A DNA stretch of 63,363 bases, counting the filler, from Hyphochytrium catenoides (lineage: Eukaryota > Protista > Hyphochytriomycota): assembly GCA_900088475.1 (NCBI GenBank). It is 8 parts of 8 records of this genome, joined end to end, with 100 filler letters (N's around TTAATTAATTAA, not from the genome) between each part and the next. Parts side by side here need not be neighbours in the genome. Positions count along the whole stretch, not along the records: positions 52,331 to 58,462 come from FLMG01000626.1; 7 more parts are not named here. One strand, given 5' to 3'. Shown here piece by piece: positions 52,331-58,462 of this stretch. Position numbers and translations under genes: made by a program. The notes beneath the pieces were generated by a model. The model had not been told where the DNA came from. It ran no database searches and was given only the letters and a program-made list of their open reading frames with translations. Numbering within the stretch: the first letter of the stretch is position 1; every line of letters starts with the position of its first letter.

Positions 52331-52558
52331 CTTCTCGTCTCTCCTCCATTTTCTGATGACCTTCTGCGGAGGAAACAATGCTTGGTATTGGATATCTGAA
52401 AGGAAGAGGAGATAGCATACACTAAGAGATAAGAGACCAGCGAGAGGTTTACATTTTCCTCTCTCTCTCTCTTTCGTTTGCTTTTCTCTCTCTCTCTCTT
52501 TTTTGGGGAGTCTTTAAGAGCTAGCGCCTTCTCTCTCTCTCTCTCTCTCTTTAGAACA

Positions 52559-55500
52559 ATGAGCAAGCGAGGAAGCTGTCACCCGTCGCCGCGGCATCTC
52601 GATAAACCCAAAAGACAGCTCAAGGCCGCTGCTTGTCTTTTCCCTGCTCCGTCGTCACTACTCTTTTTTCTCGTCTCTTGTCTTCTCTTCTGTCTCTCTT
52701 CTCTCCTCGCAGTGTCAGAAGCAGCCGCAAGTATGGAGAAGAAAGAAGAAGAGACAGAGCATCACATCTCAAGATCACTTGTCTCCTTTCTCTCTTCGTC
52801 TCTCTCCTCTATCCACCAGAGCTTCGCCTCTTCCGCAGGCACAATTAACACTGCTCATCGGCTGCTCAGGAGCGCGGCAGAAGAAGAGACTCTGATGGTC
52901 AATAGCGCCAGCCGCGCGGCGCTATTCCAAAAGGCTCCAGCGCTGAAAGATGACTATTCTTTCCTTCTTCTGGTCGTGACGAGTGTCTCTGACGCCGTCA
53001 TCTCTCTCTGCTACTTCGCCATCCCGCTGCAGATCTTCTACTTCCAACGGAGCCTCACACTGGCGCCGCGGTTCAAGCAGGTCCTTGCGCTCTTTGAGCT
53101 CTTCACCACGTGCTGCGGCGTCACTCACCTGGCCGCTGTCTGGCACCCGTGGACCAGCCCTAACCTTCTCATGGCTGGGCTAAAGGTTGGCACGGCGCTT
53201 ATCTCTCTCTTCACAGCCGTGGTGATGATGCAAGTCATCCCAGAGGTACTCACCTTACCCGCGCAGGCTGGCCGGTTAGAGGCCGAGCTCGGCATCCGCA
53301 TCCAGAAAGAGAACAGACTTAAAGAGGCAAATGACATGCTCATGAGGTTCCGCAGTGTGACCCAGCACATCCGCAGCCGTCTGGATATCAAGAAGATCTG
53401 TGAGGCCACGGCATTGGAGCTTTCGTCGGTGCTAGAAGAGGCCGACGGGGTGGCGATCCTGCTACCAGATGAGGAGGATCAGCGGTACGTCTGTCTGGCT
53501 GAACGGCTAAATAAAGACAGAGCTTTCAGTTGGAAGAAAGTGGAGATCAACATGCGCTCTCCGCTTCTAGAGCAAGTCTCTCTCACGAAGAATAAGGTGA
53601 TTAGTCTCTTAGAAGAAGATCTTGAAAGCATGGCTATTCCTCGCTCTGTGGGCTCTCAAGCGGGGACCTTCTCTTGCCGCTCCGGACTGCTGGTAGGCTT
53701 TTCCATAGACGGGAGACGGCATCCAGGGCTGGTTCTGATATGTACGAAGGAGCAATGGTGGTCGCTCCCGCAGGCAGAAATAGAGTTTCTGGGAGATGTG
53801 GTGCATCAGGTGGAGATTGTTCTAAGTCAGACGCTGCAGATTGAGCGAGAGAAGCAGCGGATGCAGGAGCTGTCGCTGCAGCAAAAGAGGAATTACGAGC
53901 TGGACAGAGCCAAGCAAATGGCGGAGATGGAGACGAAGCTTGCGAATGAGTTCTTGGCGTCCATGTCTCACGAAATCCGTACACCTATGAACGCCATCAT
54001 TGGCTTTGTGACGTACATGCTGCAGACAGCCGAGACCGACTCAGACCAACGGGAGATCTTGGAGACCATCGCCGCTAGCTCACAGACACTTTTAGGCATT
54101 CTCAATGACATCCTTGACTTCTCTAAGGTGGAGAGTGGGAAGCTAGTGCTGAACAACGAGGAGTTTGCCATCCGCCACTCGGTTGAGAATGCTCTCCATC
54201 TCATGTCGAGCAACGCTGACACCAAGGGCCTGCATCTGAACTATTTGCTCTCAGAGGAGGTCCCAGAGGTCGTCATAGGAGACCCAGGCAGGCTGCAGCA
54301 GGTCATAATGAACCTTTTGAGCAACGCCATCAAGTTCACATCTCGCGGCGAGGTTTACATCGTTGTCACCATGGAAAGCTCTGTCCCTGCCTCGAAGAAG
54401 CTGACCAGCAGCCCACGCTTTAGTGAGTACGTCGCGCGTAAGGCGAATCCCCCTTCAGACACCAGTGGGAGCGTGGAAGTGTACTTCCATGTCGTTGATA
54501 GTGGCATTGGCATTCCAGCGGACAGGCTGAGGCTTCTTTTCCAGCGCTTCAAGCAGTTGGACTCTTCTTTGACGAGGAGGTATGGCGGGACAGGCCTGGG
54601 GCTAGCTATCTCTGCTAAACTTGTAGAGATGTACCACGGAGGCATCAAGGTCCTGAGCGCAGAGGGCGAAGGGTCTATGTTTACCTTCAGCATGAGGTTC
54701 CAGACGGCAACAACGCATGTGCCGACGCCAACACATCGCCATGGCAACGTAAGACTTCCCTCTCACCTAGCTGTAGCTGTCATTTCTAGCTGGCCAACGA
54801 CCTGCCAGTCTCTCCAGCAGATGATTCAGAGCTCTGGGCTTATGGCCAGCTCTTTCTCATCTTGCACGGCGGCGCTCAAGTCTTCTAAGGAAGAGGGTAC
54901 GGCTTGGGGAGCCTTGGTGGTGGATAACGATTGTCTCTCCTATTTTTCCTCCTCTTCACCAGAGTCAGAGCAAGCAGAAGCAGCTCTAGAGATCCTAGCC
55001 GCTAGCTGTCCCGTGCTTTTGCTAGTGAGACCAAGCTTGGCTCCGCAGCAGCCACCACGCGCCGCCAAGTATCTCAGTCATGTCCTGCACAAGCCTTGTA
55101 AGAAGGACACGCTCCTGCACCACCTGCAGGACCTTCTCTCGCCAGAGACAGCAAGAGGAAGACGACGTCCCAACGTGAGCACCATCCTCACCTCGCCTAA
55201 GAGTGACTTCCAGGACTTATCGGTTCTCATCGTGGACGACAATGCGGTCAATAGAAAGGTGATACAACGTCTATTGGAGCCGTTAGGTGTGAAGGACGTG
55301 GATCAAGCTGAGAACGGCTATCAAGCGGTTTTCGCTGTCCATAAGAAGCGCTATGATGTCGTCTTTATGGATGTCGCTATGCCAGAGTTGGACGGCTGCT
55401 CTGCGACAAGGATGATCATCGCTGGGACAACCGTTGGAAGCATGGACAATAACAGAGATAACGATGATGATGGAGAGGTAGACAACAGAAGAAGAGATGA

Positions 55501-55696
55501 GGACGATGAAGACGCTGTAGAAGAAGAGCGCCGTGATGACGGCCCGCCTTGGATCATTGCCATGACAGCCAGTACAATGTTAGAAGAGCGGAGACAGTGT
55601 TACGAGGCAGGCATGAACGACTTTTTGCCCAAGCCGATCACTCCTAAGGAGTTGGCGGCAGTTTTGCAGACCTATGTCGATAGATGTAGACAATAA
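52559..55696 (+). CDS. Ethylene-receptor-like hybrid histidine kinase (ethylene-binding TM domain, GAF, HisKA, HATPase, degenerate receiver, receiver), intronless
   Basis: First ATG at 52559 in the 1072-codon ORF. TM domain SDAVISLCYFAIP...LFELFTTCCGVTHL...LKVGTALIS...VIPEVL matches ETR1 SDFFIAIAYFSIP...FGAFIVLCGATHL...AKVLTAVVS...IIPDLL. H-box FLASMSHEIRTPMNAIIG; N-box NLLSNAIKFT; G1 DSGIGI; G2 GGTGLGLAIS; receiver IVDDN...FMDVAMP...FLPKP. Confidence 0.93.
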   Translation: MSKRGSCHPSPRHLDKPKRQLKAAACLFPAPSSLLFFLVSCLLFCLSSLLAVSEAAASMEKKEEETEHHISRSLVSFLSSSLSSIHQSFASSAGTINTAHRLLRSAAEEETLMVNSASRAALFQKAPALKDDYSFLLLVVTSVSDAVISLCYFAIPLQIFYFQRSLTLAPRFKQVLALFELFTTCCGVTHLAAVWHPWTSPNLLMAGLKVGTALISLFTAVVMMQVIPEVLTLPAQAGRLEAELGIRIQKENRLKEANDMLMRFRSVTQHIRSRLDIKKICEATALELSSVLEEADGVAILLPDEEDQRYVCLAERLNKDRAFSWKKVEINMRSPLLEQVSLTKNKVISLLEEDLESMAIPRSVGSQAGTFSCRSGLLVGFSIDGRRHPGLVLICTKEQWWSLPQAEIEFLGDVVHQVEIVLSQTLQIEREKQRMQELSLQQKRNYELDRAKQMAEMETKLANEFLASMSHEIRTPMNAIIGFVTYMLQTAETDSDQREILETIAASSQTLLGILNDILDFSKVESGKLVLNNEEFAIRHSVENALHLMSSNADTKGLHLNYLLSEEVPEVVIGDPGRLQQVIMNLLSNAIKFTSRGEVYIVVTMESSVPASKKLTSSPRFSEYVARKANPPSDTSGSVEVYFHVVDSGIGIPADRLRLLFQRFKQLDSSLTRRYGGTGLGLAISAKLVEMYHGGIKVLSAEGEGSMFTFSMRFQTATTHVPTPTHRHGNVRLPSHLAVAVISSWPTTCQSLQQMIQSSGLMASSFSSCTAALKSSKEEGTAWGALVVDNDCLSYFSSSSPESEQAEAALEILAASCPVLLLVRPSLAPQQPPRAAKYLSHVLHKPCKKDTLLHHLQDLLSPETARGRRRPNVSTILTSPKSDFQDLSVLIVDDNAVNRKVIQRLLEPLGVKDVDQAENGYQAVFAVHKKRYDVVFMDVAMPELDGCSATRMIIAGTTVGSMDNNRDNDDDGEVDNRRRDEDDEDAVEEERRDDGPPWIIAMTASTMLEERRQCYEAGMNDFLPKPITPKELAAVLQTYVDRCRQ

Positions 55697-56849
55697 AGAA
55701 TGACAGCGGCCTTGTCCCTCATGATTGCTAGCTACTGCTGATGAATGACTGGAAAGGAGGAGAAGAGCAACAGCAGACGATAGCGCATACATGTTAGTCA
55801 CTTCTTTCTTCTCTTGCTCTTTGTCTCTTTTTTGTTTGTCTCTCTAGTCAAAGTGACATCGGCGTCCGTGCGCCTCGTGGTGGATGATGATGAAGCTTAA
55901 TAATAAGGTGAGCCTTTGCAGGTGACGGCCTTCCGTTTGCCTTGAAGAAAGGCGCCGGTCCAAGGAGAGGAAGAGGTCAATGTATCCATTGCTCAAGGGC
56001 CAAAGGCGAGGCCAGCAGCCCTGTACATTCTTAGGTGATGAGGTGCCGTGCGATTGGGTCTCTTGACTCCTTGTGGACGCGATGGCAAACGCAGTTCAGA
56101 GACGAGGAGAGCTAAGTAAGGCCAGCCCTCAGGGCCTGCCGCGGAAAGCACGATCTAGTCATTATATTCAGTCTATTAGCAAACTGCTTGACGCTGCTCT
56201 TTGGGCGGCTTTCTTGGAGGCTTCCCGTCAAAGATCGTGGACTCTTGCTTGAGCAGCTGGGGCTCCACACGGTGGCAGGCCTTGGATGCCTTAGCTCAAG
56301 TTCGAGTGCTGCACCTCGGAGACCGTCTCTCATCAGCAGCAGCTGGCAGACTTCAGGCAGTGCAAGAGGCAAGGGAACCTACTCGAGAGATGCAGATGCA
56401 AAGGCCGGCAAAGGACGATCTGTCTCTTCCAGTCTCTCTCTCTCTTGCCTTCCTCTTCAGCTACTCTCGACTGACCGCCTCAGGGCCGCTTTCCTCCTTA
56501 TCCTGCCCCAAAGAAAAGAAAAGCCCCATTGTTCTCTGTCAGCAAACTGCAAAATGTTTTCCTCTTCTTCTGGCGTCTGGGATCTGCTGGCCGTTGAGAG
56601 AAAGAGCTCCGTTCTGTTAGCTTCTGCCGTCTTTCTTCTTCTTCATGTTTCGCTCTCTCGTCTTCTGGCCTGGTCTTCGTGGCCCTTAAAGCGTGGTGGT
56701 AGGAAACCGAAGAGAGAGAGAGACGTGGGAAGGAGAGAAGGAAGTCAGGTCTGTCAGTTACCACGTAGTCTCTCTATCTCACTTTTTAGCTCCATCCGCA
56801 GTAGCGCGCGGGGCAGGGAATGAAAGGGAAGCAAAAAATGTTCTACATC

Positions 56850-57540
56850 ACCCTCCTCTCACTCTCCCTCTCTGTCTCTCTCTCTCTCGGTCTCTCTTTC
56901 TCTGCCTCTCTCTGTCACTCTCTCTCTGTCACTCTCTCTCTGTCACTCTCTCTTTATCACTCTCTCTCTGTCACTCTCTCTTTGTCACTCTCTCTCTGTC
57001 TCTGTCTCTGTCTTTCATTTACTCTCTCTCGGCATCTCTCTGTGCCTCTCTCTCTTTCTCTCTTTCTCTCTCTCTCCCTATCTATCTCTCTATCTCTCTC
57101 CCTCTCTCTCTCTCTCCCTCTCCCCTGTCTCTCTCTCTTTCTCAGATACAGCTGAGAGGGATTGAGCTATTAGCCTCTCCTGTCTGACGATGGGCAGCCC
57201 TATGCAAACGCCTCAATTAGCCGGACAACGGGCAAGTGCCGACTGTTGATCAATAGCTGGGACCTGCCCTTCCGTCATTAGGACAGAGCATGGTCCAGCG
57301 CTCGTGACCGGAGAGAGAGAAAAGTAGAGAGAGAAGACGACACAACCATGGAACGGGGAAAGAAGAGGTGGAAAGCCAGACAGCAGCGAGCACAGGGAGA
57401 GAGAGAGACAGAACAGTAACAAGAAGGCAATTAGTTATCAAGAGAAAGAAGAGAGACGAGAGAGAGAAAAAGAGAGACGAGAGAGACAAAAGGAGAGGAG
57501 AGAGAGAGAGGGAGCGAGGAAGAGAGAAAGCGAAAAGGGA

Positions 57541-57586
<46 letters not shown>

Positions 57587-57645
57587 GGAGAGAGGAAGGG
57601 CGAGAAAGAGTGAAGAGAGAGAGAAAAGAGAGAGAGGAGCCGTTA
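56850..57645. repeat. (CT)n block and (GA)n block facing each other around a ~250-nt unique core
   Basis: CT-rich 56850-57145 (with repeated ctctgtcactct units); GA-rich 57390-57640. Confidence 0.85.
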
Positions 57646-58057
57646 CACGTCTCTTCCCCTCCCAACTCCCACCTCAAAGATGTAACGGTCCATTTGTTTT
57701 GTACAGATTCTCGATCGAGTGAAGCCCATCACAAAAGCGGGTCTAATTGCGAAATACATCCTTGACTTCCGGAGGATTCGGAATAAAGGTCTTAAATATC
57801 TTGGAAAGGAGAGGATAGTTGTGGACAGTAGGGCATTGTCTGTGATCTTTTTATAACTTCTACTGTAGAGAGAGAGATGGGGGAGAGAGAGAGAGAGANN
57901 NNNNNNNNNNNNNNNNNNNNNNNNNNNNNNNNNNNNNNNNNNNNNNNNNNNNNNNNNNNNNNNNNNNNNNNCAAGAGACTGGCGTCGGCAAAGAAAAAAG
58001 ATGAAGAGGAAGCTCGAAGATCCAGCCAAGCCCGTTGCACAGTTTCTCTCTCTCCTA

Positions 58058-58090
<33 letters not shown>

Positions 58091-58462
58091 ATATAACCCA
58101 CCACTATGCTGCCCTCACTCCTACACCAAGCCGCCAGCTCCATGTCTTCCTGGCGTTAGGTACTGGGCATGCAAACGCTTTCTCTTCCCTCCTTGTGTTG
58201 GGATGGGAGTCCAGTGCCCCTTAGAGGCAGCACCGCCTCAGCTGCGACTCCTCTTTATAAAACTTCTCCTCTGCTGCTGTCAACCCTCAAGTCTCCTTTC
58301 TCTTTCTCTCTGTCTCTCTCTCTCTCTTTGTTATGGGGAAGAAGCACTATCTCGAGGAGAGGAGGAGCGTGGTGGAAAGAGGAACAAAGAAAAAGGACGG
58401 ATCCAAGAAATTATAGCACCTCTTTAACTCTCTCTCTCTTCTCTCTCTCTCTCTCTCTCCCT

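Follow-up and report, generated by a model that had tools for sequence, protein, structure and literature searches.

A gene on the plus strand of the Hyphochytrium catenoides assembly GCA_900088475.1 probably codes for a hybrid histidine kinase that sits in the membrane and belongs to the ETR-like class of early-diverging fungi and other opisthokonts; it is a putative Cu(I)/ethylene sensor with a phosphorelay. It lies on a 6.1-kb piece (FLMG01000626.1, positions 52,331 to 58,462) of the window, i.e. the whole 63,363-nucleotide stretch (filler included). Judged by the order of its domains (EBD, GAF, HisKA, HATPase_c and REC) and by its place in the tree, the predicted protein is a fungal-type ETR homologue (HHK group XVIII-A). 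The original prediction had presented it as an ethylene-receptor-type kinase outside land plants; its nearest relatives are fungal rather than plant receptors, and to present it as a striking find was an overstatement, as the class was already catalogued. Complete ETR-type hybrid kinases are known from early-diverging fungi, Capsaspora, Acanthamoeba, diatoms, algae and cyanobacteria (PMC5285503, PMC6324907, PMC6944256, bioRxiv 10.1101/2023.12.22.573025), and fungal and protist homologues of the ethylene receptors have been catalogued since 2017. Since members of this class had already been reported from microbes, early-diverging fungi among them, the gene adds one member to a known family and leaves the known distribution of that family unchanged.

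The ethylene-binding-type sensor domain

The ETR1_N domain with its three transmembrane (TM) helices occupies positions 52967..53257 (+), as delimited by Pfam PF25487, alignments, the helices of the structural model and a motif survey. The Pfam match (residues 137-233, numbered from the first in-frame ATG; E 7.1e-23, 81.1 bits, the cut-off being 27) spans profile positions 2-97 of 97, and the AlphaFold model contains three helices (model residues 19-54, 59-84 and 91 onward) with pLDDT values of 86-95, in agreement with the three TM helices originally predicted at about 52960-53260. A hydropathy scan (>1.6) flagged TM1 and TM3 only, TM2 being assigned from the model.

The equivalents of the Cu/ethylene-site residues D25, C65 and H69 of ETR1 are D145 (nt 52991), C186 of a CGVTH motif (nt 53114) and H190 (nt 53126), while ETR1 Y32, I35, P36, K91, T94 and P110 correspond to Y152, I155, P156, K209, T212 and P228; all were as originally predicted, and the three Cu/ethylene-site residues lie at the nucleotide positions given then. 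D145, C186, H190, K209 and the other equivalents listed here fall in invariant or nearly invariant columns of the fungal and plant receptor alignments, in which T189, the equivalent of ETR1 T68, is also conserved. In Arabidopsis ETR1 the Asp-Cys-His triad and the helix-3 Lys serve to hold a single Cu(I) in each monomer and to link the binding of ethylene to output (PMC10266040). The ETR1 I62 equivalent, in contrast to these conserved positions, was identified by the motif survey as T183; among 146 relatives this position is Ile in 138, Val in seven and Thr in one. Wang et al. reportedly found in 2006 that mutating D25, Y32, I35, P36, I62, C65 or H69 abolishes ethylene binding by AtETR1. Six of these seven binding-critical residues are identical in the protein described here, the exception being I62, which is replaced by Thr183, and at that position only substitution by Ala has been studied in ETR1. 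Individual AtETR1 residues of this set are backed as binding-critical, and the I62A substitution abolishes ethylene binding (PMC8879215, PMC6586836). Taking Met113 as the start (see below), no Cys, and so no pair resembling the ETR1 C4/C6 that links plant subfamily-1 receptors into disulfide-bonded dimers, is present in the approximately 20 residues ahead of TM1 (MVNSASRAALFQKAPALKDDYSF); the Cys residues of the doubtful N-terminal extension occupy a position that is not homologous to C4/C6.

The fold and Cu site could have been kept for a natural ligand other than ethylene, for instance a different small molecule, unsaturated or gaseous, or for sensing copper or redox status itself, in which case the rare Ile62-to-Thr change would reflect a changed specificity or affinity. 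We consider this unlikely. It would fit the presence of T183 in place of an Ile that is essential in AtETR1 and shared by the great majority of the relatives surveyed (PMC8879215, PMC6586836), and the fact that, in the literature searched, plant and bacterial receptors are the only ones with experimentally confirmed ethylene binding (PMC10266040, PMC11819568). However, the three Cu/ethylene-site residues, the K91 equivalent and five of the six other listed positions are conserved; Thr, like Ile, is beta-branched, so that the pocket may tolerate it; and Paraphysoderma KAI9141580, the domain of which is otherwise canonical, likewise has Thr in place of I62. In addition, variation within the sensor is strictly synonymous, which argues that its function has been conserved.

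Proposed signal transmission: connector, kinase and receivers

From TM3 onward to the GAF domain runs a long connector helix (53258..53341, +), which is unbroken in the AlphaFold model over model residues 91-161. The GAF domain (53342..53878, +) was assigned with AlphaFold and Foldseek and is collinear, in the alignment, with the Pfam-annotated GAF domain of plant receptors. The model has a pLDDT of 90.5 (>90 for the GAF region), and the top Foldseek matches to this region were GAF domains, namely 3ci6 (the best; E 8e-9, TM 0.77), 3trc and phytochrome GAFs. The GAF-like region originally proposed is therefore upheld as a fold, although Pfam returns nothing for it even at E<=10.

The HisKA/DHp domain (53945..54139, +; PF00512, residues 463-527, E 7.5e-20) contains the motif SHEIRTP with the phospho-accepting His, H471, at nt 53969, and is followed by a HATPase_c domain (54278..54700, +; PF02518, residues 574-714, E 1.7e-22) with its N box (NLLSNAIKFT, N589), G1 box (VDSGIGI, DxGxG at 647-651), F box (LFQRFKQ, F661) and G2 box (GGTGLGL, 676-682), bearing out the intact His kinase that had been predicted around this His. 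The HATPase_c domain contains a low-complexity insert at about 54377-54475, and alignments to PDB structures jump residues 608-639. The kinase core resembles CRE1/AHK-like and bacterial hybrid kinases (7p8e, E 3e-63) far more closely than it does the catalytic domain of ETR1 (4pl9, E 1.3e-16).

Searches of codons 716-885, which link the kinase to the canonical receiver, returned no sequence match in Pfam or PDB (both E<=10), and because these searches of the linker, like the Pfam search of the GAF region, were blank, structure or profile methods were needed for both. On the evidence of its model fold, hhalign and alignment to bacterial first receivers, the linker contains a degenerate (pseudo-)receiver at 54770..55138 (+). 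It adopts a (beta-alpha)5 fold in the AlphaFold model (pLDDT >90), scores hhalign probabilities of 96.6% against a receiver profile and 98.5% against a bacterial REC1 profile, and aligns with the bona fide first receiver of cyanobacterial and other bacterial relatives; SS743-744 stand in place of the acidic pair, and Asp789 and Lys845 are kept. This degenerate domain, which follows the kinase and precedes the true receiver, had been overlooked in the original prediction, as had T183 at the I62 position and the doubtful start codon.

The canonical receiver (55214..55684, +; PF00072 Response_reg from residue 889, E 1.3e-24) has the acidic pair DD893-894, the phospho-accepting Asp938 (nt 55370), T1003 and K1025, so that the receiver with its phospho-Asp and Lys was correctly recognised at the outset. 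It is interrupted by an acidic low-complexity insert (55445-55543). Its VIA-align Z scores are about 20 against the SLN1, Candida Sln1 and CheY receivers, and the receivers that it most resembles are those of Sln1-type and other hybrid kinases of fungi; for two of these the structure has been solved in complex with an HPt protein (Ypd1 for SLN1). The catalytic set of a hybrid histidine kinase is complete (H box; N, G1, F and G2 boxes; receiver DD, Asp, Thr and Lys), and by these motifs the kinase and the canonical receiver are catalytically intact.

Since sensor-type residues are combined with an intact kinase and receiver, an output through a His-Asp phosphorelay is a reasonable reading, and the protein is likely to be a Cu(I)-dependent sensor of ethylene or a small alkene that feeds such a relay. 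The architecture and residues partly support the ethylene or gas sensing through a His-Asp phosphorelay that had been suggested earlier, with the reservation that I62 is replaced by Thr. In the proposed mechanism, the transmembrane domain would bind Cu(I), by means of which it would take up ethylene or a small unsaturated ligand like it; binding of this ligand would move helix 3 together with the connector and the GAF domain and would alter autophosphorylation at His471. The phosphoryl group would then take the route known from other fungal hybrid kinases, from His471 to Asp938, on to a Ypd1-type HPt protein and from there to response regulators, and would not pass to CTR1/EIN2.

Relatives and phylogenetic position

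An exhaustive HMMER search for relatives of the sensor region found 4596 proteins. In the best 20 of these, all 17 proteins with a named source come from early-diverging fungi, the other three being metagenomic or Logan sequences, and the best sensor matches include a Rozella 'putative ethylene receptor 1'. A word-indexed protein search returned only generic bacterial hybrid kinases for the whole protein and only two plant matches for the sensor region; the protein itself was absent from both protein collections searched, and a metagenome scan for close relatives found none.

In a maximum-likelihood tree of the sensor region, with cyanobacterial ethylene-binding-domain proteins as the outgroup, the protein falls within a 21-row fungal/holozoan clade (support 90/92) and its sister group is a set of four Entomophthoromycotina proteins (97/94), while the plants form a separate clade (100/100). 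This tree thus places the protein outside the plant clade.

Close matches in overall organisation include the group XVIII-A proteins of Rozella allomycis (RaHHK2, EPZ33527/APW29918) and Paraphysoderma sedebokerense (KAI9141580, KAI9142709), which have the same domain order, belong with it to the 21-row clade of the tree and align end to end with 33-34% identity over 93-98% of the protein length. What sets the protein described here apart from them is its own low-complexity inserts, one in the ATPase domain and an acidic one in the receiver, and perhaps an N-terminal extension. The nearest sensor regions are those of the Entomophthoromycotina homologues (Conidiobolus coronatus CcHHK3 KXN68996, Neoconidiobolus KAI9294195, Basidiobolus ORX98857 and Entomophthora KAJ9061474), with BLASTP identities of 33-37% and, in the HMMER search, E values of 1e-43 to 1e-50 over ETR1_N and GAF; the Basidiobolus gene, like the gene here, has no introns. 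These proteins are shortened (357-626 aa), lack the receiver and have a partial or missing kinase (bioRxiv 10.1101/2023.12.22.573025), whereas the present protein is complete. The complete kinase and receiver would accordingly have been retained in this gene and lost in its closest Entomophthoromycotina relatives, and a complete copy beside the shortened genes bears on how such genes erode.

With Arabidopsis ETR1 and other plant receptors the protein shares an ETR1_N domain with the D25/C65/H69 Cu site, K91, Y32, I35, P36, T94 and P110. Plant receptors likewise run from ETR1_N through GAF to a histidine-kinase module, and ETR1 also has a receiver. The protein differs from the plant ETR1 subfamily-1 in having Thr for I62, no C4/C6-type Cys pair and an extra degenerate receiver, and in lying outside the plant clade. 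Cyanobacterial hybrid kinases (Nostocaceae HLP91487, Leptolyngbyaceae HEY9796604) have an N-terminal ETR1_N, a transmitter and two tandem receivers, the first of which corresponds to the degenerate receiver here but is intact; they are far longer, as PAS and other modules separate the sensor from the kinase. In SynEtr1, the characterised cyanobacterial example, signalling depends on histidine-kinase activity (PMC11819568).

More tentatively, the protein might be an ancestral, complete, phosphorelay-competent ethylene/alkene sensor of the zygomycete lineage, in which the Ile62-to-Thr change tunes affinity or ligand range or, with a lower likelihood still, the gene might have been transferred into a non-fungal host. 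If either were true, the gene would supply a complete receptor, amenable to experiment, with which ethylene perception could for the first time be demonstrated biochemically in a eukaryote other than a plant. The earlier description of non-plant ETR-like proteins as rarely characterised is fair. The literature searched yielded no reports of ethylene binding or signalling by any non-plant eukaryotic homologue, and no ligand, copper or phosphotransfer data for the close fungal homologues. The gene is a convenient candidate for a binding test of such a homologue, because it is complete, intronless and so easily cloned, is under purifying selection, encodes an intact kinase and receiver, and carries a natural pocket variant.

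Extent, variation and origin of the gene

The ORF listing gives a single ORF at 52478..55696 (+), whose first ATG, at 52559, would yield a protein of 1045 aa. The span originally assigned to the gene, 52559-55696, is uninterrupted, but its start is doubtful, and the true start is probably Met113 (nt 52895). We favour Met113 because codons 1-112 are CT-rich, weakly constrained and missing in homologues. The conservative CDS therefore runs from Met113 to the stop codon (52895..55696, +) and encodes, without introns, a 933-aa ETR-like hybrid histidine kinase. The N-terminal extension (codons 1-112, 52559..52894, +), the coding status of which is doubtful, has a hydrophobic stretch at residues 34-52 and no Pfam match (E<=10), and contains a polypyrimidine tract followed by CAG at about 52690-52712. 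In the alignments homologues start near codon 130, about 20 residues ahead of TM1. SNP density is about 2.5% in codons 1-112 versus about 0.75% in the remaining CDS, and the SNPs listed for the extension comprise four synonymous and four non-synonymous changes. Immediately 5' of the first in-frame ATG lies a CT-dinucleotide-rich tract (52447..52558, +), which is probably promoter or 5' UTR. In the read analysis 52447-52559 was passed over as a repeat, and contigs end there.

Public DNA runs contain two haplotypes of the gene at about equal depth, in samples of 2011 and 2017, and the k-mer depth of the sequence is high (about 350-450 in run X2). From 52895 on, 16 of the 21 listed SNPs are synonymous; all 11 in the sensor and DHp regions are, and three of the five non-synonymous ones (codons 616, 630 and 638) lie inside the HATPase_c insert. 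The well-supported indel from 52895 on (TGG at 55470) is in frame and inside the acidic receiver insert, whereas indels right after the stop codon are of 1, 4, 5 or 7 nt. The CDS thus combines mainly synonymous substitutions with well-supported indels that keep the frame, and the gene is therefore under purifying selection.

Judged by the gene tree, the host is most likely an early-diverging fungus of zygomycete grade, which would be heterozygous and live in soil as well. That the contig is foreign to the labelled organism, deriving from a co-cultured or contaminating early-diverging fungus, is improbable. The tree, which sets the protein firmly among fungal sequences, would agree with such an origin, as would the near-identical 151-nt fragments found in an unrelated soil metagenome and the highly fragmented state of the assembly; however, the same two haplotypes recur at about 1:1, at high k-mer depth, in two samples taken six years apart, and no conflict would arise should the labelled organism itself be a fungus of this kind. 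It is very improbable that the gene survives only as a relic that has fallen silent and out of use, as its closest Entomophthoromycotina relatives, eroded and without receiver and kinase parts (bioRxiv 10.1101/2023.12.22.573025; PMC5285503), might suggest, since the ORF is unbroken over 2.8-3.1 kb with every catalytic motif present, and haplotype and strain variation is strongly synonymous with in-frame indels, the frame-breaking ones lying in the flank.

Four flanking ORFs on the 6.1-kb piece had no Pfam match and no second gene was recognised there; an Rfam search of the piece found nothing, and scans for bacterial promoters and terminators were uninformative. The 3' flank, outside the gene, contains a CT microsatellite array at 56856..57143 (a eukaryotic simple repeat identified by TRF, without strand assignment), and an AG array, also from TRF and unstranded, lies in the flank at 57441..57639. 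The CT/GA microsatellites and the acidic inserts prompted the idea of an apicomplexan/coccidian origin, which was set aside because the tree groups the protein firmly with zygomycete fungi and because CT-rich tracts 5' of genes are frequent in fungi too. A bacterial contaminant was rejected, since simple repeats of eukaryotic type flank the gene, two haplotypes are present and the relatives are fungal.

Domain architecture and conserved residues

Between 52331 and 58462, the part of the window holding the gene, there is a single long ORF on the + strand (52478..55696), whose first ATG, at 52559, would give a protein of 1045 residues, numbered here from that ATG. The gene has no introns, and its GC content at codon positions 1, 2 and 3 is 57, 40 and 64%. 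Pfam assigned ETR1_N (PF25487; residues 137-233, E 7.1e-23), HisKA (463-527), HATPase_c (574-714) and Response_reg (from residue 889), all exceeding the curated cut-offs by far. The ORF, these domains and the residue positions confirm the original prediction of a complete ethylene-receptor-type hybrid kinase, and all of its coordinates were correct. The equivalents of Arabidopsis ETR1 D25, C65 and H69 are D145 (GAC, 52991), C186 (the second TGC of TGCTGC, 53114, the Cys of a CGVTH motif) and H190 (CAC, 53126); the H-box histidine is His471 (CAC, 53969), and the kinase and receiver are intact as claimed, keeping all of the N, G1, F and G2 boxes as well as the DD/D/T/K set of the receiver. When the protein is aligned with receptors of fungi and plants, the D, Y, I, P, C, G, T, H and P110 equivalents are invariant, and those of K91 and T94 nearly so.

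The region previously described as GAF-like gave no Pfam match of any kind even at E<=10. In an AlphaFold model of residues 112-459 (input alignment of 46 sequences; mean pLDDT 90.5) three helices cross the membrane, and a long connector helix leads to an alpha/beta domain, whose top Foldseek matches are GAF domains (3ci6, E 8e-9, TM 0.77; 3trc; phytochrome GAFs). In alignment the region is also collinear with the GAF that Pfam annotates in plant receptors.

Residues 738-860, between kinase and receiver, had no sequence match in Pfam or the PDB. They align with the genuine first receiver of cyanobacterial and other bacterial relatives, have a predicted (beta-alpha)5 fold (pLDDT above 90), and matched receiver profiles in profile-profile comparison (probability 96.6% and 98.5%). 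Alignment and model thus identify this linker as a predicted degenerate receiver, phosphorylation of which is unlikely because its acidic pair is replaced by Ser-Ser. The C-terminal receiver matches those of yeast SLN1, Candida Sln1, a Chaetomium hybrid kinase and CheY with Z about 20; an acidic low-complexity insert (residues 963-995; 55445-55543) interrupts it. The insert varies in length, one haplotype having an in-frame TGG insertion at 55470, which is consistent with a disordered loop.

None of the remaining ORFs of 52331-58462 had a Pfam match, and an Rfam scan of the same piece gave no match. Downstream lie a CT microsatellite array (56856-57143) and, ~300 nt beyond on the same strand, an AG array (57441-57639) that is its imperfect inverted complement, followed by an assembly gap of Ns at ~57900-57971.

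Relationship to fungal and plant receptors

Word-based protein searches for relatives were uninformative, so the sensor region (residues 125-445) was used in an exhaustive HMMER search, which returned 4596 relatives, of which seven reached E<=1e-30. Of the 20 best matches, 17 have a named source, in every case an early-diverging fungus; three are metagenomic or Logan proteins without one. The best matches include Entomophthoromycotina (Neoconidiobolus, Basidiobolus, Conidiobolus, Entomophthora), Sorochytrium, Blastocladiella, Allomyces, Catenaria, Paraphysoderma, Entrophospora, Synchytrium, Amoeboaphelidium and a Rozella protein annotated 'putative ethylene receptor 1'; other matches were to Capsaspora, Corallochytrium, cyanobacteria and Selaginella. 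Over 93-98% of its length, the window protein aligns end to end with Rozella RaHHK2 and two Paraphysoderma proteins (33-34% identity).

Phylogenetic analysis of the sensor region (maximum likelihood, LG+C20, 33 rows) placed the window protein as sister to four Entomophthoromycotina proteins (97/94) within a fungal/holozoan clade (90/92), apart from the plants, which form a separate clade (100/100). It shares 37% identity with the Basidiobolus protein, as much as Basidiobolus and Conidiobolus share with each other, which indicates a deep divergence, at zygomycete level. Single-exon genes likewise encode the Basidiobolus protein and a metagenomic homologue. At 8001-10526 of L002, a 34 kb metagenomic eukaryotic contig from ENA (GC 37%), a single-exon gene between JAB, SNAP-like, ABC and HMG-box genes encodes an ETR-like hybrid kinase of 841 residues (P0137), which belongs to the same receptor class.

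The protein is not a plant-type ETR1, since the tree sets it apart from the plant receptors, its kinase core is far nearer to CRE1/AHK-like and bacterial hybrid kinases (7p8e, E 3e-63) than to the ETR1 catalytic domain (4pl9, E 1.3e-16), the C4/C6 pair is absent, and it has tandem receivers, like cyanobacterial kinases with an ethylene-binding domain and unlike ETR1. Homologues keeping all binding residues were shown in early-diverging fungi in 2017 (PMC5285503) and later in Capsaspora, Acanthamoeba and a diatom (PMC6324907); the subject has been reviewed (PMC6944256). According to a 2023 preprint, the receiver is missing and the kinase incomplete in Entomophthoromycotina copies, complete copies being kept in two Zoopagomycotina species (10.1101/2023.12.22.573025). 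Given this catalogue and the tree, the window gene is a new complete member of an already known class, adjoining the eroded Entomophthoromycotina genes.

Putative ligand and proposed signalling route

Thr183 occupies the position of ETR1 Ile62, a point missed in the original prediction. Of 146 relatives carrying the C-G-x-T-H motif, 138 have Ile here, 7 have Val and a single one, from Paraphysoderma, has Thr. The I62A substitution abolishes ethylene binding by AtETR1 (PMC8879215); I62 is also counted as an essential residue (PMC6586836). With Thr at this position, ethylene is a putative ligand.

By analogy, Cu(I) would be held by D145, C186 and H190, ligand binding would be coupled via K209 and helix 3, and the signal would run through the connector helix and the GAF domain to control H471 autophosphorylation; the phosphoryl group would then pass from H471 to D938, to an HPt protein and on to response regulators. 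The parts and their integrity are observed, and the remainder is extrapolated from ETR1 biochemistry (PMC10266040), SynEtr1, AzoEtr1 and the general background on fungal hybrid kinases. SynEtr1 signalling depends on its histidine kinase, and ethylene binding has been demonstrated for AzoEtr1 (PMC11819568). The suggestion that ethylene or a related alkene or gas may be sensed via a His-Asp phosphorelay, not the plant pathway, is supported in part: the intact parts and the non-plant clade favour it, and T183 limits the support for its ligand. The gene's chief value is as a clean candidate for a biochemical test that such receptors still lack.

Haplotypes, constraint and the start codon

Three DNA runs contain the gene sequence; they come from one organism, sampled twice, in 2011 and 2017. 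Two haplotypes of about equal depth (262 vs 269 and 227 vs 275 in X2, a public run of the source organism) extend across 52560-56400 in runs six years apart, which suggests a stable heterozygous diploid or heterokaryotic strain; paired contigs at 55394-55567, for example, have 7 differences and a 3-nt indel. Among the differences listed (33 others lie outside these tallies), 16 of the 21 SNPs from 52895 on are synonymous, including 11/11 in the sensor and DHp (HisKA) regions. Three of the five non-synonymous SNPs are in a low-complexity ATPase insert (codons 616, 630 and 638), the others being M707I in the HATPase_c core and N872K in the linker before the receiver. From 52895 to the stop the well-supported indel is the in-frame TGG of the receiver; only one contig, of depth 4 in X3 (another such run), has a 1-nt gap at 54155, which is probably an error. 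Directly past the stop codon, indels are of 1, 7, 5, 4, 1, 1 and 3 nt. The synonymous bias and the contrast between these indels indicate purifying selection, and the gene is real and constrained. Two 151-nt contigs from a 2025 soil metagenome run are 98-99% identical to 53333-53612 (1-2 differences), which places the organism, or a very close relation of it, in soil.

We take Met113 (nt 52895) as the conservative start, because homologues begin ~20 residues ahead of the first membrane helix, near codon 130, and because the CT-richness and variant pattern of codons 1-112 speak against coding there. The variants listed for these codons are four synonymous and four non-synonymous, SNP density is about 3x that of the rest of the gene, and one contig has a length difference, in low-complexity sequence, that is not a multiple of three; a hydrophobic stretch here may be a mere effect of CT composition. 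Met59 (52733) is a possible alternative start. Inside this doubtful extension, a pyrimidine-rich tract at 52690-52712 ends in a 3'-splice-site-like CAG, which could be a splice acceptor at about 52712, and several contigs diverge around 52673-52807.
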